The notes below the pieces were generated by a model. The model was not told the DNA's origin. It did no database searches and was given only the letters and a program-made list of their open reading frames with translations. 64,000 nucleotides of DNA from Anthoceros angustus. Its lineage: Eukaryota; Plantae; Anthocerotophyta. Numbering within the stretch: the first letter of the stretch is position 1; every line of letters starts with the position of its first letter. This document shows, piece after piece, positions 1 through 61,247 of this stretch. Both the position numbers and the translations under genes were made by a program. The stretch covers positions 252,247-316,246 of the forward strand of contig MU008187.1 in the NCBI GenBank assembly GCA_010909165.1, written 5' to 3'.

Positions 1-439
1 GCCACTGCGGGTGAAGAGTGTACATATCTGACTGCCCTCTTCTGTGTAGATTTCAGCGAACAAACTCTCCTGTAAAAGCGAGTCTGTCGTTTTGCACTGT
101 TCCCAGTTTCACCCCAAGACATCACAACTGCTCCCATGAATAATACCTTTCATAGCTGGCCCCCGGGATGACATCACAACCTTCCACCGCAGAGTACTCC
201 ACACAGAATCCGATCCCCCGTCGCTTAAACCTCATCAGAAAATTAAAGCGCCTGCTCACCGTAACGCGCGTGTGGTTGCAAACCCCGAGGCGCCATGCGG
301 CCGGCAGGCCGCTCTCCTTTCCCGGCGACCAACTCGCCGGCAGCTGGTTCAACTTACCTTTCATAGTTCTCAATGGTAATGTCCTGCTCAACGGCTACGG
401 GTTGGGGGTCTAGGGTTTTCGCTCCGTCGACTTATCAAT

Positions 440-590
440 ACGCACGCAAGGGGTGTATGAGGGAAAGCACATAAGGGAAAGCACACAAGGGAAAGCACAT
501 AAGGGAAAGCGCATATAATACAACAAGGGAAAGTGCACATAATACAGCAAAGGGAAGCGCACACGATACGCATAGAAGGGAAAAGCACAC
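440..590. repeat. Degenerate short tandem repeat, unit approx. agggaaagcacata
   Basis: Repeated agggaaagcaca(t/c)a variants read directly. Confidence 0.8.
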
Positions 591-992
591 ACTCCCTCGT
601 CCGGGCACACTAAGGGAAACCGTTGGAAACAAAACCCAGCACTTGGGTAAGGCATTCGATTAAGCAGCAATCTTCAAACCTCTTAGGTCTACACCAAACA
701 TTGTTAGCATCTCTCAAGCATGTGGGCTCTCACCTTGTCGTGTTTCCATTTTCCTTCAGGCTCCCAAAAAGTTCGATTTGCTTACTTGACTTATCTCCCA
801 TAAAGTTCATTTTTGCTTAGTAGAGTTATCTCCTACAACCTCGTTCATCGAAAGTGGGTTCTAACCAAGCCTTTTCTAGAGCTTCCATCCCATCCAATCT
901 TAAAAGAACACCGTCTGCAAGACCTTGTGTATGCGAGAGAAGCCATGGAACCCTCTGTCCCCAGTAGGGATTGAACATTTCCATGCTACGAG

Positions 993-1184
993 TGAACAGA
1001 GTCACATCTCGTTCACCAAACTCATGTCCTCAGCAGCCAATTTAATAACACCACTCTGAACAGAGTCACATCTCGTTCACCAAACTCATGTCCTCAGCAG
1101 CCAATTTAATAACACCACTCTGAACAGAGTCACATCTCGTTCACCAAACTCATGTCCTCAGCAGCCAATTTAATAACACCACTC
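993..1184. repeat. Perfect 64-bp tandem triplication
   Basis: The unit tgaacagagtcacatctcgttcaccaaactcatgtcctcagcagccaatttaataacaccactc starts at 993, 1057 and 1121 with no spacers. Confidence 0.95.
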
Positions 1185-1289
1185 TTGTTCATGATTGTCG
1201 TGACCAGCCAAATTGTGGCATCCCACTTGTTGCAGAACTTGACGTGTTCCTTTGTTTTGTGATGGCTCATAAGACTTACTATGCCTCAT

Positions 1290-2082
1290 GACAAGCTTGT
1301 AAAGTGACATGAGCACCTTCACTTTGGTGCTTGCATGTATGCCCTTGGGTTGCTCAAGAGCATGTACAAGATGCCCAGCTGCCGTCGATATTAGAAACAG
1401 CATAAACGCATCTTTGATTATTCTTGCCTGCAAGAACATAAGCATTTTTATGTGTTGCAGTTAGGAGAGCCAAAGACATGTCTGGGATTCTTCGTAGCCT
1501 TGGCCACCGCATGCTCCACCATGCGTTCATGTTTGTTGTTCCAAACCAAGCCATGTTCCTTAGTACACTGCTGTTGATACCAAAAGTGGACATATGTGAT
1601 GTCCACTTTTGGTATCAACCACACCCAAAACTATTTTGTGAACGAAGCTCGATTATGAGATGAAGGTGGTAGGCTTCAATAGAGCTGTTGCAGTCTTGGC
1701 TTGCATGAGGCACTGTGCACATGGTTTTGAGCCGCGTATGGATGATGTGTCTCCACTGCTGTTTAAAGTACCTGATGAAAGTGAGAAAGATAGGCGTATG
1801 TTGGGCATTCAAAGCTTTAAATTTGATCCATGTCGCTTCCTCTTGAAAATATGTGATGACTCTCTTATAGGACATGATGTTACCAAGGTTTTGCATGAGG
1901 TCAGCTCTTGCATGTCCATTCTTGACTTTTTGCAGCAAGTTCCGTAACCAGGCATACCTTACATGCCATAAACATAAGCCCAACTTATTCTCACCAAATA
2001 CTAACACATTCACCATCATTACCATGGAGTTGATACGTACCACATAAACATGAGCCTCTATCTCCCACCAAAAAATACACAA
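1290..2082 (-). pseudogene. Degenerate MULE transposase with SWIM zinc finger
   Basis: LCLWHVRYAWLRNL and HASQDCNSSIEAYH match MULE transposase-domain motifs of plant SWIM-finger proteins. CTCS*ATQGHTCKH (~1310-1360) is a SWIM CxC...CxH with an internal stop. Frames are broken. Confidence 0.75.
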
Positions 2083-5000
2083 GCCTCCATATTATGTATA
2101 TCCTTCGGTGGGGAATATATAGCTCTACATCCTAACATCTTTGGGAAAAGGAAATTGGAGGATCGATTATGGCCATCAAGCCTACGTGATGTGCATATCG
2201 GAGCCAATTAAGGCCTTTCTTAATACAATGGGCAATGAAAAGAGAGCTCTATGGTATAATTATCCCAAAATAAAATCACATAAGGTGTGATTGTATGGAG
2301 TTCTTGAGTTGACAACTTCTTAGTTAGAAGAATCCTCAGAACTATATGGTAAAGCTAGGTCTCAAATATTTTGAAAAATTGCCAAGATTCATTAAGAAAA
2401 GCTAGAGTGTGACCTTAGCTCTATTTAAAGTCTCAAGCCGTTGTGGTTAAAAGTATGTGGATAGCTACACAGATCTGCCTTATTATTGTAGGCGTCGAAG
2501 AGAAGTAGAGAGCAACACTTTTTGGAGATTATTGGTGAGAGGGGCCAAATGTTGTGTTGTGAGTGTAGTGAGTTCTATGTGATTGCAGAGGTACTTGAAT
2601 TTTAATGGTGAAACTTGTGAGATTTTGGACCAATTGCTCTAGCACGCGTCACATGTCATGGGACATGTCGTAGTGGGTTTACTTGAAGACTCGGTTTTTG
2701 GATATTTGATATCAAGTATCTCAAGTAGATAAGCAAGTGAAGTAAAAATCGTTGAAGTAGAATAAACAACACCAAGCACAAACATAAATTTGAACCTAGA
2801 ATGTCAGGGACTTTGGAACTGTTGTTAACACCTAGTGTATGGCGAAACGAGAGAGGAGATAATTGGATTAAGTATGATGAAGCAACTGCCGCTTCCATTT
2901 TACGTACAGTGAAAGAATTGGAGACATGCACCAAAGTTTCATCTTAAATTGGATTGAAACGAAAGGGTGACATGCTGACTTGTAAGGTATTAAGTTCAAG
3001 CGATTTTGCCGTAAATCTTCGACCCATAGAGGAAATACACATGGACATACAAACACGAAGAAAAATTAAGATAGTTGAGTGTATTTGACTCCACTTTTTG
3101 CATAGTCACTTTTTTTATGGCTTTCGTTTGCTCTTTATTATTATATTTTTGCGTTATCGCCTGCTTTGTATTTGCATAGGTCCTAGGTCCTCGAGAGCAA
3201 CATTTTAAAGGAGAACATCAACACTTTACGTGAACCTGAGCAAGAGGAAAATATTCCAACTCTCCTTATTAAAGAACCCAACGGTGAGATGGTAGAACAT
3301 GACAAAGAAGCTGTTTGTGCCTTTTTCAAATTAGTGAATGACGCTTGCAGAGGGAGAGGGAGAGGGAAAGAGCAAGAGAAAGGAAACATGAAAGAACGAG
3401 AAATGCAGAGGGATTGTCGGCTCATAAGAAATTGAGCGTGGGTGCAGCACTACTATACGACATCATCATGGAGTAAAACTTTCTCACATATTTTTTAACA
3501 ATAAGTCTTATTAATAAAACACTAGATTAATATATCAACATGGTATTATCTTAGTAAAAATCAGATACTCTTTTTATGATATGAGCCTTGACAAATGTCC
3601 CGTGTCTTTTATTTTTTATGATGATAGGCTTGTGGCGACTCCATTTACAATTTTTTTGTTAAAAAAACTCAGGTTATATTTAAAAAAATAAGATAATAAG
3701 TTTTTAGGTTAGTGCAGCCCTAACAGATTGTAGTTACATCTTTTAGGGTTGCATAAGTGGCACTGATTTAAGATCATCTTCCAAAAACAAATCATTCCTA
3801 ACAAACCTATAACTTGCATTCTTCCCTCATTTTTTCATGCACTTCGTCCTATTCCTAGTGATCAAGTGATAGAGATTGTTTAGGCACTTGACACAAAAGC
3901 TTGTGCTGCACCCACCTTTCTCTTTTCTTATATCAGAGCTGCAACCTGGTATGCAAATGTGACTGGAGGACCAGGCATGAGTCTTCCGTAATAGAATTCA
4001 CCAAGTGACATAATAGGAAAAGTGAAGTAACCGTGTCACAACAAACTTCAAAGACAATCGCGTTTGTAGAAAGATGGCCGCGTTTTCCACTTAGACTCGG
4101 TCGTCTACCATCGGGTCCTACTTAGGTCTCATAATGTTTGGAGTGGTGAAAGAAGCTGCCATTAGAAGAGGCCCGTGCTCATAATGGTAGACTGTGTGTG
4201 TCGAGACTCGGAAGATGAGCACGGTGGACGGACAGTAAACTTGAGCTGGTTGCAGCGAACCGGAGAGTTGGTGGCCGGGAAAGGAGAGCGGCCTGCCGGC
4301 TGCACGGCGCCTCCGGGTTTGCAGCCACACGCGCGGTACGGGGGGCAGGCGCTCTAATTTCCTGATGGAGGTTTAGGCGCGGGATCCGGTCCGATGCAAG
4401 TCAGATGCCATGCTTCAAGGCTCTCGAAGTCTTCCAAGAGAGAATGTACATATTGTATGTAGTATATTTGATGTGCAAGGTGGGGCCGATTGCCGACTTG
4501 AAAAGCCTTTCAGACTCCTGTGATTAAAGATGTCTGCACAAGTACGCCATGACAACTGCCAACACGCCAAGAGGCCAAGAGCTGCAGGCCTGCCCACCTA
4601 CACACAGGACCAGGTGGAGGACATCAAAAGTTAGCAGGCATGTCGAGAAATGCATGCCAGGGCCAGGCCAAATCATACCACAAAGGGTGGTAAGCCAGGC
4701 CTGAAGAAGGGGCAGGCAGGATTTTAGAGGTGCAGGACACGCAGGGCATGGAAAATTGAAATTCGGTCCGTATGTAGCGAGATCTCTCCCACGGGCAGGT
4801 ACCATACTTGTGAGGCCCCCATGACAGAGGCATGTGCGCCTCTTAGCTTCTCCAATCGCGAGTCCCGAAAGCGCCATGTACGGGAGATGCTCAGCTGCAA
4901 AAAAGCAAGCGAGGTATCTTCTCGTTTTTGTCCGCCATTCTCTCTCTGGATAAGCGCTTGCCCCCACTCCTAAAAACGCTCGCTGCAATTCGCTAACGAG

Positions 5001-5083
5001 GAAACGATCGCTGCAAATGCGTGGTCCTGCCCCTTCCCGCTTATCCACTCGCTCCGTCTCTAACTCACACGCGCAGCCCGGGC

Positions 5084-5090
5084 TATAAAA
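5084..5090 (+). promoter_or_regulatory. Candidate TATA box (TATAAAA) upstream of the hairpin transcript
   Basis: ggcTATAAAAgcg in GC-rich context, ~190 bp upstream of the hairpin, with no + strand protein gene following. Confidence 0.5.
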
Positions 5091-5274
5091 GCGCTAGCTT
5101 ACTTGGTCGATTTTCGGGCAAGTAAGGAGTGCAGCCTTCTCGAGACGTGCGTTGCGTGCCCTCCTTGCGTCGCCTGGCGTCGCGTTCCGTTGCGTTGCGT
5201 CCCGTGCATTGTGCTGCGTTGCGTTGCGAGCTTGCGGTGCGTCGCGTCGCGTCGTGTCGATTGGGAGATTTCTT

Positions 5275-5397
5275 GCTGAGGGAGGAGAGCAGCCTTCTAT
5301 CTCTGAAATCCTCTGGAAGTTGCGGAGTCGAGTTTCCTTCTCCCTCTCCCACTGCCTGAAGATTTCAGAGAAAGAAGGCTACCTTCCTCCGCTTGGC
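5275..5397 (+). ncRNA. Candidate pre-miRNA hairpin
   Basis: 5281-5320 pairs with 5351-5390 without bulges, with only symmetric mismatches and one G-U. Core: agccttctatctctgaaatcctc versus gaagatttcagagaaagaaggct. Loop region ~30 nt. Not matched to a miRNA family I recognise. Confidence 0.6.
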
Positions 5398-5822
5398 CCG
5401 CGGAGATGGCGACGTCGCTCTCTTGTGCTGTACACAACCTCCGTTTGTTTCTTGGAATACGCGCAGTACGTATGCTCGCCTGAGGTTGCCCGCCTTCGTT
5501 TGCCTGTACACGTCGTTTTTGGCGCAAGATTTCACGACCTAGTGCTCGTTGATTTGCCGCTGTGTTTCATAGATCTGTTCGCTGTCCTGTCTCGCATGAT
5601 GCATCTGCAGCTCGAGCAAGTCCCTTTGTTGCGTTGTGTGTTCATCACCGCTTTTTTCCTGCTCGGGCTCTCTTGTTCGTGTGTTCGTGTTAGCCGCAGG
5701 TAGTAGCGTGAAGCGTTTTCGTTTTTCTCCAAACTTGCATCTTAGCTAAGAATCTTGTTGGAAGAGAATCCTACCTGAACTGAATCAGAACAGCAGGTAT
5801 CTGCGTTTTGTTCTATTGATTT

Positions 5823-6946
5823 CTACACACGCTTGAATTCGTGCCATAGTTCGTAGTGGTTGAAGAGTAGGCTGTCGTGAGTCTGCATACCAACGTACGT
5901 GAGTCCAACTTGAGCCAGTCTAGGTTCGCATCCGGAGTCCCGGAGCCTTGTGCAAAACTTGATGTTGTGCGACACGAAGAGACGGCCATGGCCGGGGGCC
6001 AGGTTAGGTCCCAGGCGTTCTAGTCCCTTCCACACGAGTTTGTCAGGCATGTGCAGGAACGCTGCGCTGGCGTAGATGAGGTCGAAAGGAAGAAGCGATC
6101 CATCCTTGCCGCCGAGAACTCCGATGTCCAGATCCTCGCTGCGGACAATGACGGGCCGCTTGTGAAGGAGCCCCTGCGCCGGCAGCTCGTACAAGAGCGA
6201 CGCCAAGAGCGACGGGGGATCACGCTCTAAGCAATGGTAGCGGCGCGGAAGCAGATGGCGGATGAAGTGAAGCCCCGCTCTCAGAGTGCCGCATCCCACC
6301 TCTAGCACCCGGTACTGCGGCTTCAACCTGGAAGCGTTAGCAAGAAACTCGAAGACGTCCCGGCCCCCTGCCCACGGCTCTCCGTAATAGCTGTGATGTT
6401 CCTCTACTAGCAGCTCGCTAGGGCATATCAAGGCTGTTCTGTTCTCACCACCTTCCAGGTGAGAGATGCCTTTATACCTGCTGGGCGGAGTGGAGATTAA
6501 AACGTGAAAGACGCAGCTAGCAAACAGTGCATTGGCTAAGAATAAGGATTATATGTCGCTACTTGCCAAGTTTTTTAATGCTGAGGGTGTCACCTTTGCA
6601 AATCTGCCATCTGCTGCAGCCGGGTGCGGGGGTTGATCCCCTTCCGAAGCTGGTGCCACGCATCTGCTGTTGTCGGTGTTTCCCCCAAGTCCAGCCGTCT
6701 AAGCTGCCTCTTTACCCATCGCAAATCGCCCTCTGTTGCACCAACTGGCTCCTCTTGTGCAGCTACTGAGCTCTCTTGCTGAGGCGGATTGATTTCTTTC
6801 GCGGCACCTTGACAGTTGCACAGCGGAGCAGGCGAGGGTTGTCTGCTGCGCATCGAAGGAACTGCAATGAGTAACAACACTGGCAACAAGCAGGCAAGTG
6901 CTAGTAGCAGAACCGCCAGCGGGCGTGTTCCAATTGCTGGCTGCAT
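5823..6946 (-). CDS. SAM-dependent methyltransferase with N-terminal membrane anchor (2 exons: 6946-6594, 6477-5823)
   Basis: Motif I VLEVGCGTLRAG and the plant-conserved LLVEEHHSYYGEPWAGGRDVFEFLA. The GT-AG intron joins the exons in frame. Hydrophobic N-terminus. Confidence 0.9.
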
Positions 6947-7240
6947 CTCTCAAGCCTGCCCTCTCAGCTAGTGACCTGCGCGGCCTACCATTTCCTTCCC
7001 CGCCGCTGTGCAGCTTCTACCTAGGCAGCCCAGACCCAAGCTTTGCTCATACCCTGAACATTCGGCTCACAGGCATGACACCAGGGAAAGGCACAAGGAA
7101 GGAACGGCAGATGCGAGGGTGCGAGAGCTGGACAAGGTGGCCTCCAAGGGTTTAAGTCATCCATACCATTGCTAGGGTTTTTGTCCGGTCCTTGCTACTG
7201 TCCTGACGAGCATCGCTGGTGGGCAGACTCATCTCCAGGC

Positions 7241-10200
7241 ATGAGTTTCGGCTGCGTGGCCTCGTCTAGGCAGCATTTGAGCTTGCAGACCTCGTTTTTT
7301 GGCTTGTCTCCGTGTGTTGGTGGGTCACATGGCTCGCCGGATCTTAGCACCGTAACCCTGTGCCGCACGGTTAGGAGTACAGTGAAGTGTGAGAGCACTT
7401 CTGTGGACAAGGCCCGGGAAGCGGCGGACTCTGGAGGAGCCAAAAGGATTCGGAAGAGTACCGAGACATCTAGGAATAGAATTGACAAATGGGGGACAGT
7501 GGGTCCGTCTGACCAACTCGAGGCATCAGGATCGGCTGCATCTGGTGGTGGTGTCGCCGAGGGAGCAGACAGAAGTACCAGAAGCAGTAGCGAGGGAGCA
7601 GCAGGCATAAATACCAGATTTTATGCAGACAGGGCACCACAGCCCTGGACGAGGGACTCTGCTGGGAAGGGCAGGGTGGATGACCTGAAGAGAGATGATG
7701 ATAAGTTGGAAGAGAAATTGGATGGAGATTCCTTGTCGAAACCCAGCAGGGGTGAAGTCTTCCTCAGAAATGCTATGGAGAGGCAAAGGTTACAGGCGCA
7801 GCGAAGCACAACACCGGCGTTTCCTTACGTACAGGGGCCCAAGCAGGATAGCAGGAAAAGGGACAAAACGAAAATTTTGAAGGCTTCAGAGGCGTCTTGC
7901 TATGGGTGTGGAGCAGGTCTTCAATGTTTAGATCCTGAGACCCCGGGATATGTAGCCCCTGAAGTCTTCGAAGTGGTAAGCTCTGTGGAAATAGCCCTGC
8001 ATGTCCTCATCATGATGCTGATGAAGTGCACTTTCCGGGGATTTTCGGGTTTAACAGTATGTCTGCTTTTGTCTGCAGAAGCAGAGGCACCATCAGCTGA
8101 AGGATGTCCTCTGTGGCAGGTGCCGTTTGTTGTCGCAGGGGCAGATGATACCTGCAGTCGGAGGGCATGGTGGCTATGGAAAGGGTAAAGGATTCGTCTC
8201 TGCAGAAGAACTTCGATCACAGTTGACCCATCTTCGGAACAGCAAAGCTCTCATAGTGAAGCTGGTAGAGATCTTTCCACTTCTGCGAGGTTTGTGTTGC
8301 TGTGCACATGCTGCCGATGGTTGATTCTTACTGAATGGGAGCGTGTTGCAGGTAGACATCGTCGACTTTAATGGGAGCCTGCTAACTCGAGTTCGTGATC
8401 TTGTAGGGGCTAATCCAATCATTCTGGTTGCCACAAAGGTAATCGGTCGTGTTTTTCATGATCTCCTGAGGGTTGGGTACTTTTTCTGAACAGATAGAGC
8501 AGAGTCCTCTTACGATGCCCTGAATTTGCGTCATCAGGTCGATCTCCTTCCAAAAGGCACAGACCTGGGCGTTGTTGGGGACTGGATAGTGGAGTCGGTT
8601 CTTCGGAAGAAACTTAAGTAAGGGACATGTCAAGTTGCTTCCTCTCTTGGTTTGGCTATAAGCACACCGAGGAACATTTAGTCGTCCTTGACCTTGCTGT
8701 TGTTACATTGATTCCAGCGTTGTAAGTGTTCACTTGACAAGTTCCAAGTCTTCCACTGGCATATCTGGAGTTGCAGCTAACATCCAACGGCAAAGGCAGG
8801 TTGAGAAAACTGATCGCACTGTGTTTTGAAGTTGACTTGTGGTATTCATGAGGTTTCCTGCTTCTGGGTGTTGGGTAAATTGTACATTACATTTGAGCAG
8901 TTTTTTTCGTGTTGATGTGCACAGGGACGTGATGTGTATGTTCTGGTAAAGGATCATTCCTACTCTTGACACTCTTCTCAGGCTTGCAGCAGCTAACTGC
9001 AAACATTTGGTGCCTTTTGAGGGGCTTCTAATTGGTTCCCAACAACGGCGTTTTCTATCTTAGGGTTCAGCAAATGTTGGAAAGTCAGCTTTCATCAGTG
9101 CTCTACTTAGTAAGCCCACAATCCAGGTCCTCCTTCAAGATGGTTGTGTTAAGTTGCTTATCCGTTAGATTTTCCAGCTTACTGATGATAATGATGAGGC
9201 AATCGCCATCTGTACGGCAGAGGAAATGGGCTCACGAGATCCAGCAGCTTTAGCAGCAATGCGGAGGAAGCCAATCCAATCTGCCATGCCTGGCACCACT
9301 CTTGGTCCAATTGAAATCAAGGCTTTCTCTGGTGGAGGGGTAAATTTCCCTGTGACTTTTCCAAGTTCTCACCCCCAGAGTGATATGCATCTGTTGCATG
9401 TCAGCTGTTTGAGCTGATCTGGGAGGATCTTGTTTCTGCAGAGCTTGCATGACACTCCTGGAGTACATCTGCATCATCGTATGACAGTTGCAGTTCATCC
9501 AGATGATCTTCCTCACATTGCTCCTCGCCGCCGGCTGCGGGGGAGTGCTGTCCTTGCTCCATCCCTCGCGCCGAGGGAAAAATCTGCTGACTCCGACCAA
9601 GAGACAGAAGCTGACAGTTCAGATGCTGACACTCAGTTCCAGAAACAAGAGGTGCAGTTTGATGGTGCAGGAACCTTAACAGGAACAACCCTTTTCTGGG
9701 GAGGTCTTGCGAGGATAGATGTGCTGCAGGTCAGTCTTGACTCCGCATTACTTCCTGCTTCTCGATACTTGTCGTTGCATGTAGCTCTCGCAGCAAACTG
9801 ACAAACGGTATGGAGGATAACAGGCGCCTGCAGGAGCAAGGTTGCGATTCTATGGACCGACAGGCCTTCGGGTCATTATGGTCCCCACTGCAGAAGCGGA
9901 CGACTTCTATGACGTGAGTTCCTCCTGGCCTCTAGGTGTGCACTGACCAGGCAGGCTCTAAGTGGCAAGTAATCCTTTTCTAACGGGTCAAGACTTATGT
10001 GCAGGAAGAAGTTGGCAAGATCTTGTGCCCTCCAACTGGGGAAGACAAATTATCTTCATGGGCAGGACTGCAGAACCAACACAGTGTTTCGTTAACACTT
10101 GAGAGCGGCTTGAGGTCAGTGGCTCATAACTCTAGTCACACATCACATTGTGTGCAAGAACTGAAATCCTAACTCCCACTCTCACTCCCTTGATTGGCTA

Positions 10201-10459
10201 CAGGCCTGCAGGAGACGTGGCCATATCCGGGCTGGGATGGATCACGGTGGAGTATCCAAACACCGAGGCCTTCACAGCCGTGACTCAGGAGGACAGGCTT
10301 CGGCTGCAAGGGACCGTAGACATGGTGGTTCATGTTCCCAAAGCAGTGGAGATCTACTCCAGACCACCCATGCCTGTAGGTGTCCACGGCCCCCTGTGGT
10401 ACAAGTACGCGGATGTCTCAGACGACGAGCTAGAGTCCAGACCCAGATTCTTCTACTGA
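7241..10459 (+). CDS. NOA1: NOA1/RIF1 (YqeH-type circularly permuted GTPase), ~12 exons, probable organellar transit peptide
   Basis: Zn-finger CYGCG...LCGRC, VDIVDFNGS, ATKVDLLPK (G4), GSANVGKS (G1), AMPGTTLG (G2) and HDTPGVH (G3), joined across GT-AG introns (e.g. exon 1 ends 7975, exon 2 8079-8264, exon 3 8352-8438). Confidence 0.95.
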
Positions 10460-10496: not shown

Positions 10497-11036
10497 TCAC
10501 TTTGCTAAATTCTGCTTCCGTTCGAATTGACGTCGCAGCTGCAATGCTCTTTCATACAGTTGCAGATCCAAACCGTCCACGTTTCGTGCCACCCTGGCCT
10601 GCAACACCATCTGCGGAAGCGAGCCTGAGTAACGGCCTGTGCAGGGTACGATGCAAGCCATCGGAGAGGGGAGGAGGGAGGCCAGAAGTACCACGGGATT
10701 GGGGGAACCCGGCCGAAACTGTAGCTCTCCGATGAACTGAAACAGAGAGTTGATCCGCAGAGGAATGTCGCGGAGATGTTGGGTGTCCACCCGCAAGGAA
10801 GACTCGCCCTCGGTTATCACGACCAGCCCGGTCACGGCATCATAGCTTTGCAACCTGGCATGCAGGAAAAATGTGCTAAACGATTGCATCCGGCAGAAGG
10901 AGATTTCATTCAGTGGGCTTTACCTGCCAGTCACCCGCAGAGAAGCGTCCGGTGTACAGTAGCGGGAGGAAGGATGGAGCTCCCGGAGCAGGACCAGCGT
11001 GCCGGGCTTTAGCGACGAGGAGGCTGCCGCCGCCAT
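10497..11036 (-). CDS. TEN1: CST complex subunit TEN1 (exons 11036-10924, 10854-10692, 10610-10497)
   Basis: LRELHPSSRY...SLRVTGRLQSY...SLRVDTQHLRD...SLFQFIGEL...LQARVARNVDGLDLQLY matches plant TEN1 as recalled. Canonical splice sites. Confidence 0.9.
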
Positions 11037-25661: not shown

Positions 25662-28442
25662 CTAAGCAAGATAACGATAAAGCTTTCTGTCTGTCCTGTC
25701 TCTTTCCAAGAACTCCCGCTCAATGAGCGATTCAATTCTCTTCTTGATGACAGCTGGATTTGGAAGAAATCTGGCCTGCAGCTGCTTTGTAACTTCGCTG
25801 ATGATGTTGTTGTGATCCAGGACACGCCTGGATTTCATAATTCTTACAATGGCTGCCTCAATCTGGGGCTTCCTGTCCTCTTCCACTTTCTGGCGTGTCT
25901 CCTGCTTCTCAGGTTCACTTTCTTTCTGAGCCACAACAGTGCTGATTTTCACTTTGTAAAACTTGCTGGAGTACCTCTCATTGAACAAGAAGACATCATC
26001 CTCACTGATGTCCTTGCTCATTGGCTCCTTCTTCAGAACATTTTTACCTTTCACACATGCCAGAGACTGCAAGTTTCTCTTCAAATCCTGTGAAGGAATG
26101 TCAGTTGTTTGCTCTATTTCCCTGTACGTTAGCCTCTCATTAGTGTTGAACAGGAGGAGAATGCACATCTGGTAGGTGGAGACATTGAGCTCATGTTTTG
26201 CCCCGTTCCCAAATGTAGCCTTGAGATCTGCGGTCCCCATATTGGTCTGCCAGGTTAGACGCCTCCCTGTGTGCGTTGAGAGGTAATATGTCTTGAACTT
26301 CTCACACAAGTTCACCACTTCCGTAGGCAGATTACACCTTGCACCAGACTGGGTGGGCCATGATCCTGTGGTAAGGACCTGCACTGATAAAGTTGGACCA
26401 TCAACTCCCTCTCCATTCCACCCTGACGCATGGAACCCCTGCATCGTATCCCTCGATGTTTTCATGTCAAGAAACATGCCTTCCAACTTTGAGGTAAACT
26501 GATAACCACACTCTGTCTTCAGCTTAACAATGAGACTTCTCTCTGCATCATCAGATACTGTTCTGCCAGATAGTAGCCGCTTTGCCAGGTGCTGTTTATA
26601 GTATTTCTCAAAAACATCCTTCTCTTGCAAATACCTGAACAACATCATTACCTTATCCAACACAGTCTCAACGTCTTCTTCACTCATCCCTTTAAGCCCT
26701 TTCCTCAGCTTGTCATCTACAAATAATGAAATGAATTCAGGCGACCTCACATTGAGGTTGATGAAAAACTCAAAAGATGAGTTCAAGGCATTCTGGAATG
26801 TCTTGTCATTATTGAAGGATGACAAGATGATCTTATCATACTTGTCCTTCTCGTCCAGCAAGCTCTTCACAAATTCTACAGGATCTTTGAGCTTCTCAGG
26901 GTCCAATACTAATTGCCTGCCTGTGTCACGCAAGTGTGCAACCATGACATCACGGATTGTCTGTAGTCCAGTGGGGACCCGGCGAAACAGGTTGTACATG
27001 CGCAGAAGATCCTCATACTTGTCATCAATCAACATAGAAACCAGCCCTGAATTTTCCATCTCCACCAGTAGCTTCATATGGTTCCCGATCATTTCCCGCT
27101 CCACAACAGCCGTTATCTTTGCCTCACTTCTCGGATCCAGATACTGGGTGACCCTCTCTATCTCCTCAATGAGCCTCCTTTCTGCCTTCTTCAAATAGTC
27201 TGCACAATCACTAGTTTGGATAAACTGCTGTGCCTCTGATCTGTAGAACAACGAAGAGGCCTCCAGAAATGGTTTCTCAAAGTCCTCCTGATACACACTT
27301 GCTCCCAAGTCCATCAACATCTTGGTGATATTCCGCATCAATCCTCTGTTGATGATCTCCCCTGTACGTTCCCTCTGCACCAGGTCTAGAAGGGTATCCA
27401 GTAAACGATCCCTAATCTTCGGGAACCTTACAATGTTATCCCGCCACAGATTTAAGCCGAGCTCATGCACAGGAGTCTTGCTGTTGTTGGTGACATACGT
27501 CCTGTCCATGTACATCAAAATATCTCGGATCATCTGCAGGGACTTGTTATGCTCTAACCACTTGCTGTTCAACTCCTCGAGATACAAACCCCCTTGAGCA
27601 GCCTCAATGGACTTGGAGATCTCCCGCAGGTGCTCTGTCATGGTATTCACGAGCTCGTTGTAGAGCTTCTCACCGCACTTGTGGAGAACCATGTAGTACG
27701 CATTCCTGTACAAACCCCAAAAATTAATTCCTGTGCGGCAAGGTAGCCATCTGCAGGGACTTGTTATGCTCTAACCACTTGCTGTTCAACTCCTCGAGAT
27801 ACAAACCCCTTGAGCAGCCTCAATGGACTTGGAGATCTCTGCAGGTGCTCTGTCATGGTATTCACGAGCTCGTTGTAGAGCTTCTCACCGCACTTGTGGA
27901 GAACCATGTAGTACGCATTCCTGTACAAACCCCAAAAATTAATTCCTGTGCGGCAAGGTAGCCATCTGCAGGGAAACCACTCAGACATAATCGTCCATGC
28001 TCTATTCCGTGCTACAAACGCTACAACATGATGGAAGATTATCGGGTAAATTCACGCTCTGCCAACATAATCTTCACCCATACTTGCCGAGTCATTGCAC
28101 GAAACTGACAACTCGTGCGCACCATGTGCAAACCTCAGTTATCGGCTTGAATTAGCACTGTAGTCAGAGAACGCATGACAACAAGCATCCCACCCAGGCA
28201 AGGCCACATCCACCACAGAAGAACAGCCAACAGGGTATGGCCGAAAAAAACATCTCAAAACAGGGAACGCACCTATAAAGCTCCTCAAAGCTAAGCCCAC
28301 TGGCGTTATGGTTGTAGATTTCGTGAATTGCGTCCTCCAGAATCTTCCACGTCTTCTCGGCATACTTGGGATCCATCTCCACCTTGTGCTTGAATGGCTC
28401 GATCTTGAAATTTTTCTTGGTCTTGAGCTGATGATTACTCAT
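25662..28442 (-). CDS. CUL3: Cullin-3 (exons 28442-28273 and 27705-25662)
   Basis: FKIEPFKHKVEMDPKYAEKTW...SGLSFEELYR|NAYYMVLHK, the cullin homology domain YYKQHLAKRLL and the neddylation region EAAIVRIMKSRR. GT-AG junction in frame. Confidence 0.97.
27531..27974. repeat. 217-bp tandem duplication spanning the CUL3 intron/exon-2 boundary
   Basis: Copies start at 27531 and 27748. The 12-bp catctgcaggga occurs at 27531, 27748 and 27963. The second copy has two 1-bp deletions. Confidence 0.95.
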
Positions 28443-40701: not shown

Positions 40702-41158
40702 CTACGCCTTCGTAGGGCCGCCCTGCTGCGTCTTCTCTTCACCACGCACTGGCTGCTGGTTGGATGCTTCGAAGCAGGCTCTGAGTGCTTTCACCTCTGC
40801 GGAAAACTGGTGTAAGACAAAGCGGACCCAACAGACAGCATCCGTAACACAGCCTTCCTTGCCAACGATGAGTTCCTAGAACCAACCAGATTGACACTCC
40901 CTCCAATTCCTGTTTGTCTTGAGGAGACAATCCTGCACAGGGAAACGCAGTGAGCAGAGTGCAGAGGAGGCAAGGCAAGGACGCGTCACAGCGGCGAGGC
41001 AAGATGGGCCCCACGACCTGGAGGTCAAGGTAGAGTGGCGCGCAATGGTTTAGCTGCTGCACGTTGGGATCGTCATCGTCGTCGCTGGGGTTCGGAGCGT
41101 GGCGAGAGGCCGGAGAGCAGGAAGCGCAACTGGGGTAACCGGCAGCAGATGACGCCAT
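40702..41158 (-). CDS. Twin-CX9C (CHCH) mitochondrial IMS protein, COA4/Cox19-family-like (exons 41158-41018, 40932-40887, 40796-40702)
   Basis: Spliced product ...DDDDPNVQQLNHCAPLYLDLQDCLLKTNRNWRECQSEVKALRACFEAS... gives exactly CX9C-X10-CX9C. All junctions are GT-AG. Confidence 0.88.
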
Positions 41159-41544
41159 AGCCTCGTACGCTTTGCGTTCAGTTTTCCTCCCTTGCATTGC
41201 AGTTCGGTACAGATGGTATAAAAGGTGGATATGCTCCGAATCTTTTCTTAATCCAAAACAAAGCATGCTCCAAGGACCAGCTGATCATCGTGCCAAGCTA
41301 TTTACTCGGTTCTTAGAGGGAGCTGGTCATCGTGCTAAGCTACGCACTGGGTCTTGGTGAGCTCCTGCCATGCTTTGTCATTAGAGAGTGCCAAAGCATG
41401 GCACGAGCTTACAAGAGACAGAGATAAACCCTAAACATACCAGGATCGTACACGAGGTGATCCTACAAGGTCGGGCTTTGCTTGAGCAGCATGTGTATAT
41501 ACAAGATTGAGCGGCGAGATAGTTGAAACACACCGATGTGCTGG

Positions 41545-46854: not shown

Positions 46855-47522
46855 CGCGGGATTCAAATTTGTCAACATGAAGAGTTTTTGCATTTATAGG
46901 GTGCGCTCCATCGATGGCCCACTTGTGTGGCCATTGTGAGTAACCCAGTGCATGCTGCATCGGAGACGATGGAGGATAACATAGGTTGGATAATTGCCGT
47001 TCCCACACTGGCTCAGGGATGGAGGGAGTAGGAACCCATGGACGATGGCACATAGTTGTGGTCGTAGTTGGGGTAGCAGGAGACCGTAGAATGGTAGGGA
47101 GGATGAGGAGGGTAGCTGATTGGGCTATCCTCCTCATCCTCCCCATCCACCTAGCTTGTGGTCCAGCCTTGAGAAGAGTGCGAAGAGGCTATCGACATGC
47201 TAACAAGGTGGGGCTATCGCATGACAGTCGCAAGATAGGCTGAGGCAATGCGGATGACATCGTGGAGGATAGCGAGGGCGATGATGTAGTTGTCCCAGCA
47301 ACACCAAGAACCAGCATGGTTGGGGCAGGAGTAAGTGGTGGTTATGTTGCTGGAGGGAGGGACATGATGGATGTGTCGAGGGGGGCAAATGGGGAAACTA
47401 AAAACAGCCTGGGGAGTGCGGTGTCACCAACAAGTGATAGGTATGTGTCGTCTCTTGATAGCAGGGGGTCAGGTACACAAGCGGGGAATGGCAGTGTAGG
47501 GAACATCAAGGCAAGATGCATC

Positions 47523-47850
47523 GCAAATGCAGGAAGAGCACCCAAGTGGGGAGCGTGGGGTGAGGACATGTGTGTCAAATGCAGGAAGAGCGCCTGTGGG
47601 AGGAGCATGGGGTGAGAACATGTGTGCCAAATGCACGAAGATCGCCTGGGGGGGAGCGTGGGGTGAGGACATGTGTACAAAATGCAGGAAGAGCGCCTGA
47701 GGGAGGAGCGTGGGGTGAGGAAATGTGTGCCAAATGCAGGAAGAGCGCCTGAGGGGGGAGCGTGGGGCAAGGACATGTGTGCCAAACGCAGGAAGAGCGC
47801 ATGGGAGGGAGCTTGGGGTGAGGACATGTGTGCCAAATGCAGGTGGGAGC
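47523..47850. repeat. ~52-bp G-rich minisatellite (about 6 units), probably retrotransposon-internal
   Basis: caaatgcaggaagagcgcctg(a/t)gggg(a/g)gagcgtggggtgaggacatgtgtgc repeated. Confidence 0.9.
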
Positions 47851-49446
47851 TGGAGGACAAGAAAGCCGACGTACAAAGATGAGGCATCAATAAGCAGGCA
47901 CTTGGTGGGCTGACGGCATCACGACATGGTGATGAGGAGGAGGTGAACAAGGAGGTCGAGGAAGAGGACCCAGAGGAAACCAGCCCATACTGAATTTTGT
48001 CCCGGATACATACATGGCGAAGTTTGAGGCCAAGACCATGGACCTTGGCCCTTGGGCACATGCCATAGATTGTAACATGAGTGTAATAAGGTGGAGGGTT
48101 GGTTTCTAAACCTAACTATAACAAGAGGCCCAAAAAGTGTACCAAGTCCCCAAGATTTCAACATAATTGCAACAAGGGGGTCCAAATCTCAACATAAAGT
48201 GTAACATGGTTGCGCTTTTCTCGTGGGGGTTGTTGTTATCGTTGATGGGGTGGTAAACGATATGACTTAATATCGAGTGGGCTCCTTGCGCGGGTTTGAT
48301 TATTGCTGACTATGTTCAAGGTATATTTCTATTGTCTTTTCCCTGATTAGGGAGGCTTGGGTTGATGATGTTGTCATCCCTAAACTCGAGCACTTGATAG
48401 TTTGGGTACCGAGAAATTCGAATCCCTTTGTGGTCCATTTTGCTTTGCAATTTTCTGGTAGCTTGGATTCGCTTGAGGTCAAGTATGGTTCCACCCAAGT
48501 CCCACATAAGCAATCCAAGGAGCTTCTCCAAATTCTAGCAAGTGGTGTGATCCGTTTTTTGGACATCTAAGTACATAGTTACAAAAACGCCGCGCGTGTG
48601 TGAAGTGCGGGTACCGTGTGGACTGCACGCGTACGATGACTAGAGTCTGCTGGTTCATGGGCTCCTGCCTGTCAAAAACACTAGTGGCAGCCTGTTCCGA
48701 CCTAGTGGAAATGAAAAATGGTTGGATCTGTCTGGATATCCAAAGTGGAAATGAAAAACGGGCAGCAAGAACGACATATCATGGAGGGAGGGAAGGTAGT
48801 GCACACCTCTTCCCCATGCCACATGTCCTCAACCGAGTGTAGACCGGGTTATGAAGCACATTTGAGGCAACTTAGTGAATATGAGGGCTCCATGCAGTTT
48901 GAAGGTGGCTATGGTGGTCGGTTTTGTTTTTGTTTCGGTTTTCAACACAATATTGTGCTTAAAGCCCTCAAGGCGAGCCACGTTCCATCAATTGCCCTAG
49001 CCCAAAACAAATTCATTTAACAAACATTAAGCCGTTCATAGGCGCCAAAGACTCAATTTGAGTTCCATAGTCAACTAGGGGTTATGGAGAATTTAGAGAC
49101 TATCACAAACCCTTACATGCTACCCTCAAGTCACCTTTAACTCGAGGACTTGTAGATGAAGCTGGAGCCTGCCAACCTCCTCCAAAAGCTAGAAACATCC
49201 ACATAGTCTTGTTTGTTAGCCCATGATTGCTCCCAAAATCACAAAACCACACATAGAGGAGCTAGTGCAGTTCAATACTTAGTCTAATTTCAAGTCCCTA
49301 AGATGTTCGATAATTTCCAGATTAGATTGAAACTTAAATTAATAGAGCCCACCAATTGAGAGAGTATGAATTTGAGTATACTCAAATACCTATATCTAGG
49401 TAGATACCTAAATACCTTCTCATTTTCTAAATTAAAGACTTATATA

Positions 49447-60886: not shown

Positions 60887-61247
60887 GGACGTCCGCGCAA
60901 CCAACACGCAAAAGTAGCAAGTCGAAAGAAGCAATCACACGGACGTCCGCGCAATTGTGAGAGAACATTAACCGATAGCTTGATCATGGCCATCTCGAGA
61001 GGACCAAACTACGACTCTAAAAAGTAGCGCTGGACGTCTGGTGCACTTTGAGTACACAACCCCGGGATCTCCATTGTTAGAGTGAAAAACATAGAAGGAA
61101 TTGGAACAATGCGCCGGACGTTCCGCACATTGGCGCGAGTCTGCTAAAGCCTGCGCCGGACGTCCGGCGCATTTTCTGGAGACCCCAATCTTGTGGGCGT
61201 CCAGCAAGATGGAAATGGTGGAGTGGATGCGCCGGACGTCCGGCGCA
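60887..61247. repeat. Cluster of palindromic GGACGTCC-core motifs inside the retroelement
   Basis: Perfect 20-bp palindrome tgcgccggacgtccggcgca at 61152 and 61228, with degenerate copies near 60887, 60941, 61028 and 61109. Confidence 0.85.

Follow-up and report, generated by a model that had tools for sequence, protein, structure and literature searches.

A long, strongly folding hairpin beside a convergent methyltransferase gene in the hornwort Anthoceros angustus: a candidate microRNA-like or hairpin-RNA locus

Introduction

Is a long hairpin in hornwort DNA the precursor of a microRNA, or a structure of some other origin? The question is raised by a stretch of 64,000 nucleotides of Anthoceros angustus (assembly GCA_010909165.1, contig MU008187.1, positions 252,247 to 316,246 of the forward strand), which was analysed as a whole, is hereafter called the window, and supplies all coordinates given below. 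An earlier reading, made from the letters of the DNA and called here the sequence-only reading, had proposed a probable novel MIRNA gene at 5084-5820, composed of a TATA box and a bulge-free hairpin and converging on a methyltransferase gene. In the present study, we followed up this proposal through the fold of the hairpin, the strand from which it might be transcribed, its copy number and possible origin, and its relation to known families.

Results

Sequence and fold of the hairpin

A repeat search returned an ungapped inverted repeat with arms of 47 nt, 79% complementary and separated by a spacer of 16 nt, which is the longest local inverted repeat of the 64-kb window (the runner-up has arms of 30 nt). 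The elements of the hairpin are the following.

5281-5327, + strand: 5' arm of the inverted repeat
5344-5390: 3' arm of the inverted repeat
5268-5404: whole fold-back; from the base upward, 6 bp, an internal loop, about 16 nt of lower stem, 21 near-perfect bp, a mismatched upper stem and a loop
5291-5311, + strand: best-paired 21-nt register, pairing with 5362-5382 with one mismatch and starting 16-17 nt above the internal loop at 5274

The pairing that had been claimed between 5281-5320 and 5351-5390 is indeed present, with six single symmetric mismatches, one G-U pair (on the + strand) and no bulge, and the stem, which had been thought to extend to about 5275/5397, goes on in RNAfold to about 5268/5404 by way of one internal loop. 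The RNAfold check that the sequence-only reading had suggested for this region gave a strong stem-loop for the + strand of 5260-5410, at -67.3 kcal/mol (z -4.15), compared with -51.9 +/- 3.7 kcal/mol for 200 dinucleotide shuffles, none of which was as stable. The - strand RNA of the hairpin is slightly more stable than the + strand, at -70.3 kcal/mol and z -5.3. Folding of the whole putative transcript of 721 nt (5110-5830) leaves the stem-loop unchanged. Among the 6388 windows of a sliding 130-nt fold of both strands, the hairpin comes third when ranked by energy and first when ranked by energy per G+C (0.94). These results confirm that the hairpin is real, strong, beyond chance, and shaped like a plant microRNA precursor.

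Comparison with plant MIRNA criteria

The criteria that Axtell and Meyers set out in 2018 reportedly allow at most five mismatched positions in the miRNA/miRNA* duplex, at most three of them in asymmetric bulges, and a fold-back of at most 300 nt whose duplex is interrupted by neither a secondary stem nor a large loop. They are also said to call for small-RNA reads of 20-24 nt from two or more libraries, with at least 75% of the reads placed precisely at the miRNA and miRNA*, and for transcription of the strand that carries the hairpin. Many 21-nt registers of the hairpin, on both strands, have one to three symmetric unpaired positions and no asymmetric one, and the fold-back is a single stem-loop of about 125-137 nt. 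On either strand, the hairpin has the structure that these criteria ask of a plant MIRNA.

The geometry can be followed further on the + strand, where a helix of 6 bp at the base is followed by the internal loop at 5274, then by about 16 nt of lower stem and by the 21-bp segment; above this segment, the upper stem has a mismatch every 2-3 bp and leads to a loop region at about 5321-5350. Base-to-loop processing by DCL1 uses a well-paired 21-mer about 15-17 nt above the basal loop. Under such cutting, the predicted miRNA/miRNA* site would be 5291-5311/5362-5382. As for the two candidate arms that the sequence-only reading had put forward, both do lie inside the stem, but as a pair they are one base off a duplex with 2-nt overhangs, the 2-nt-overhang partner of 5295-5315 being 5358-5378.

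The transcribed strand and the convergent methyltransferase gene

The hairpin folds similarly on both strands and, of the G-U pairs that the five transitions between its arms yield, two belong to the + strand and three to the - strand, so that the structure does not give the transcribed strand. Canonical AAUAAA is absent on both strands, and poly(A) signals are uninformative for either of them. The features around the hairpin are the following.

5083-5091, + strand: TATA box, CTATAAAAG, surrounded by G+C-rich sequence; the base of the hairpin lies 185-190 nt farther downstream
5140-5730, + strand: A-poor, T-rich block (9-19% A, 27-37% T)
5165-5259, + strand: imperfect (TTGCG)n pentamer array, with about 18 copies at period 5 and 66% matches, separating the TATA box from the hairpin
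5406-5483, + strand: ORF of 25 codons, with an ATG in good context 16 nt past the hairpin; probably not a gene
5823-6479, - strand: last exon of the methyltransferase gene, with the stop codon at 5823-5825
6593-6946, - strand: first exon of the methyltransferase gene, with a signal-anchor-like N-terminus

The TATAAAA that had been placed at 5084 is found there, inside the 9-mer CTATAAAAG, which has one copy in the 64-kb window. TATAAAA itself occurs nine times in 128 kb (both strands of the window), which implies that the 300 nt upstream of the hairpin would contain one on a given strand with a chance of about 2%. The A-poor block begins about 50 nt past the TATA box and stops about 90 nt before the methyltransferase stop; the cumulative count of A minus T is flat over 4800-5140, drops by about 120 across the block and is then flat again, and the A-T skew of the block (-0.40) ranks third among the extremes of the window. 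The pentamer array explains part of this A-poverty, but not that of 5400-5700. In the same window, the sense-strand 3' UTRs of the cullin, MBD, Myb and GH17 genes (n=4) have at least as much T as A. Since the block resembles sense non-coding sequence elsewhere in the window, it may be read as a + strand non-coding transcript, and it looks like the footprint of one that would run from just past the TATA box to near the methyltransferase stop; the evidence for this is indirect, and the sample of genes is small. Taken together, the TATA box and the A-poor block favour transcription of the + strand.

No credible protein is encoded on that strand, as the sequence-only reading had maintained. The longest + strand ORF (5152-5703, 183 aa) begins with TTG; it matches no Pfam family, and a search of 5.8 billion clustered proteins found no homologue for it. 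A + strand coding gene starting from the ATG at 5406 was considered and rejected, as the frame stops after 25 codons and the two candidate acceptors checked, at about 5709 and about 5797, do not continue it; inside this short ORF, the motif GTACGT at 5466-5471 might serve as a 5' splice site.

To the right of the hairpin, the - strand carries a gene for a SAM-dependent methyltransferase (Pfam Methyltransf_12, E 3e-7), with exon bounds taken from tblastn with plant homologues. Its stop codon lies where it had been put, at 5823, and in the - strand sense the hairpin begins 433 nt beyond it. In the protein search its best relative, from an unrelated plant, is 72% identical, and a query with the C-terminal 100 aa gave 71% at best. 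An exact look-up of 20 ORFs of the window and the methyltransferase exon in a protein collection retrieved none of them and no transcript contig, a result that says nothing on expression.

This arrangement brings in another explanation, namely that the hairpin belongs to the - strand and is part of the methyltransferase mRNA, in whose long 3' UTR or read-through tail it would be an ordinary UTR structure or a Dicer substrate. The - strand fold, being the more stable of the two (-70.3 kcal/mol, z -5.3), agrees with such a placement, as does the mRNA contig of a homologue from another plant, whose 3' UTR is 454 nt long; that same mRNA, however, contains no inverted repeat of at least 16 nt. Moreover, the 600 nt past the stop, read in the methyltransferase sense, are A-rich and T-poor (A 0.34-0.39 and T 0.15-0.17 over 400 nt past the stop), which is the opposite of the four 3' UTRs of the window, and the searches of the protein collection yielded no transcript connecting the coding sequence with the hairpin. 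We therefore regard a hairpin in the methyltransferase tail as rather improbable.

Copy number, local repeats and divergence of the arms

The 1.4 kb at 4400-5822 show no similarity elsewhere in the window except between the two arms themselves, and a probe made from the arms, allowing up to three mismatches, matched the two arms alone, so that the hairpin is single-copy in the 64 kb. One further repeat is found near its base.

5103-5140, + strand: direct repeat of 5261-5298 (27 of 38 positions identical), which places a copy of the left flank and the 5' arm base directly past the TATA box

This direct repeat suggests a local duplication, of uncertain significance.

The fold-back could also be a MITE, that is, a miniature fold-back transposon, of which the genome would then contain many further copies. 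The unit folds back over its whole length of about 129 bp, GGAGAT stands on both sides of it (5265-5270 and 5400-5405) as a conceivable target-site duplication, and a DNA transposon-like element with terminal inverted repeats of 124 nt lies 700 bp to the left. To our knowledge, a 6-bp target-site duplication matches none of the common MITE superfamilies; beyond being atypical in this respect, the two GGAGAT copies pair within the stem. The G+C content of 55% is not the AT-richness of a MITE, the hairpin shows no similarity to the terminal repeats of the neighbouring transposon-like element, and its single copy in 64 kb speaks against a repeat family. A MITE origin is, in our judgement, very unlikely.

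Far more weight has to be given to a neutral inverted duplication, a scar of DNA repair or replication that is undergoing decay, either in intergenic DNA or in a transcript without function, and yields no functional small RNA. The arms differ at 10 of 47 positions, by five transitions and five transversions, with 3, 1, 0, 3 and 3 differences per ten positions. The probability of a stretch of 20 positions with at most one difference is about 0.06, before correction for the choice of position. The arm differences thus give no sign of selection, and neutral decay would explain their pattern as well as selection would. This fairly even spread, half of it transversions, is what neutral decay would leave; the G-U pairs prefer neither strand, and the direct repeat 5103-5140/5261-5298, together with the pentamer array, points to local rearrangement. 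Weighing on the other side are the 47 nt without an indel, though chance alone would produce this with a probability of about 0.2-0.35, and the position of the best 21 bp, which is canonical relative to the base of the stem. Transcription of the region is suggested, in addition, by the TATA box and the strand-biased block, and plants usually dice transcribed stems of about 50 bp.

The window contains other strong hairpins, some of them perfect, and their presence is likewise consistent with a neutral origin.

41351-41419: hairpin of about 30 bp (-42.8 kcal/mol; z -8.6, the top z among the folds examined), just past the - strand ORF 40739-41266
47097-47143: perfect stem of 21 bp with a loop of 5 nt and one purine-rich arm; 47041-47170 folds with z -5.7, and the - strand ORF 47342-48061 ends about 200 nt away
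61152-61247: two copies of a largely palindromic 23-mer (core GCGCCGGACGTCCGGCGC), pairing perfectly across about 50 nt (z -6.1)

With these three stems of 21-30 bp, stems of at least 21 bp number about four per 64 kb, which is far above any plausible number of MIRNA genes and implies a high base rate of hairpins in this genome. In summary of these points, the earlier term "probable" MIRNA gene is only partly upheld: the precursor structure, the absence of a curated family and the lack of a + strand protein all stand, but, given that the - strand folds equally well or better, that three more strong hairpins occur in 64 kb and that the arm differences look neutral, "probable" is too strong and "possible" would be fair.

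As a separate observation, the CT-rich loop of the hairpin (5333-5355) is complementary at 21 of 23 positions to GA-rich 3347-3369 in the transposon-like element; since both are of low complexity, the complementarity is probably due to chance.

Families, targets and published catalogues

A scan of the whole window against Rfam at the gathering score gave no match, and a permissive scan of 4900-5900 returned generic long-hairpin matches on both strands, far below threshold. The top one, MIR8742 (RF04208), scored 24 bits against a gathering score of 130. The view that the hairpin is not a conserved miRNA family is borne out by this outcome. Target sites for 21-mers derived from the stem, sought within the window at a plant-type mismatch score of up to 4, came down to one borderline match in low-GC DNA, and a search over 64 kb says little. 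A search for the palindromic core in metagenomes gave 17 matches, which share merely 11-14 pattern bases; as they have nothing in common beyond these, we take them to be chance matches.

For A. angustus itself, 30 known and 180 novel mature miRNAs (182 precursors) have been described from one small-RNA library with miREvo, the novel precursors having a mean length of 70 nt and the sequences being deposited on Dryad (PMC7027989). The core of neither arm is present in the supplements of this genome paper, the miRNA sequences being only on Dryad (PMC7027989), nor was the core of either arm found in paper text. The three-genome Anthoceros paper (Anthoceros agrestis/punctatus) contains nothing on small RNAs, and the literature search found no further hornwort miRNA catalogue.

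Discussion

The reading that we prefer, tentatively and without calling it probable, is that of a young MIRNA-like or hairpin-RNA gene on the + strand; a neutral inverted duplication is nearly as likely. That the locus is a miRNA in the strict sense seems to us unlikely, and it stays an ordinary microRNA candidate, such hairpins being fairly common in this genome. From what the sequence shows, namely a hairpin, a TATA box, no coding capacity and a composition biased by strand, we infer transcription and dicing, as well as any guide strand or target, in the following manner. A short, TATA-driven, non-coding Pol II transcript would start near 5115-5125 on the + strand and would extend over about 600-700 nt in the direction of the methyltransferase gene, with whose 3' end it converges, carrying the fold-back 5268-5404. 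By its geometry, the internal loop being followed by about 16 nt of lower stem and then by 21 bp with one mismatch, this fold-back would be a substrate of Dicer-like 1. Provided that this RNA is made, the likeliest sources of small RNAs in it would be 5289-5315 and 5358-5384, and the locus would then be a young lineage-specific MIRNA gene or a short hairpin-RNA (hp-siRNA) gene.

A more elaborate version of the young-gene reading would have a hornwort-specific miRNA gene with a TATA promoter, a donor-like site past the hairpin, and a transcript running into the 3' end of the methyltransferase mRNA. We consider this whole combination to be very unlikely. If it were true, miRNA production would be coupled at one locus with antisense overlap, leading to natural antisense small RNAs or transcriptional interference.

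Known systems offer instructive parallels. Arabidopsis MIR161 and MIR163 are young, lineage-specific MIRNA genes that arose from inverted duplications; their arms match target genes, and precise small RNAs have been documented for them. The locus described here shares with them a TATA-containing Pol II unit (a putative one in our case), the absence of coding capacity and a long stem with symmetric mismatches only. Like them, it has no relatives in conserved families. The Arabidopsis hp-siRNA loci IR71 and IR2039 are, for their part, transcribed inverted repeats that give rise to small RNAs without precise miRNA-type processing. Our locus resembles them in being an inverted repeat, with transcription inferred in this case, and differs from them in the size of its stem, which at about 50 bp falls in the miRNA range, whereas theirs extend over hundreds of bp to kb. 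With Rfam MIR8742 (RF04208), it has in common the generic shape of a long stem; the alignment reflects the stem only, is obtained on either strand, and does not make the hairpin a member of this family. In comparison with the novel miRNAs of A. angustus, it is of the same class, a species-specific hairpin, with a fold-back of about 125 nt as opposed to a mean precursor of 70 nt (PMC7027989). The locus may already be among the 180 novel miRNAs published for this species.

What would be gained, if the gene is real, is one more lineage-specific miRNA or hairpin-RNA gene for a hornwort, a group whose small-RNA repertoire has been described just once, by a permissive pipeline. Well-supported young MIRNA loci of bryophytes help to date how such genes arise. 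No concept would be changed even if the proposal is true, and the chief practical use of the hairpin is as a test locus for stringent re-annotation.

Neighbouring genes and elements

Several observations on the surrounding DNA are recorded here in their own right. To the left of the hairpin, a transposon-like element occupies 217-4383, with terminal inverted repeats of 124 nt (217-340 and 4260-4383, 85%), a low-GC interior and broken ORFs; two of its ORFs have no Pfam match, and the element ends about 700 bp left of the TATA box.

To the right, the methyltransferase gene (- strand, ATG at 6946) and a YqeH/NOA1-like GTPase gene (+ strand, likely ATG at about 7241) are divergent. Given that about 300 bp separate their start codons (6946-7241), they probably share a bidirectional promoter. 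The idea that the methyltransferase gene is nested in an intron of the YqeH/NOA1-like gene was discarded as far-fetched, the latter having its own ATG and a transit-peptide-like start at about 7241. This GTPase gene has only a weak match to YqeH-like_C, at 10148-10459, and its end is convergent with a gene for TEN1, a component of the CST telomere-capping complex, at 10497-10889 on the - strand (Pfam Ten1_2, E 4e-23). Farther along the window, at 25662-27713 on the - strand, a cullin is encoded nearly entirely in one exon of 683 codons, with the Pfam Cullin domain (E 2e-213) and a neddylation domain.
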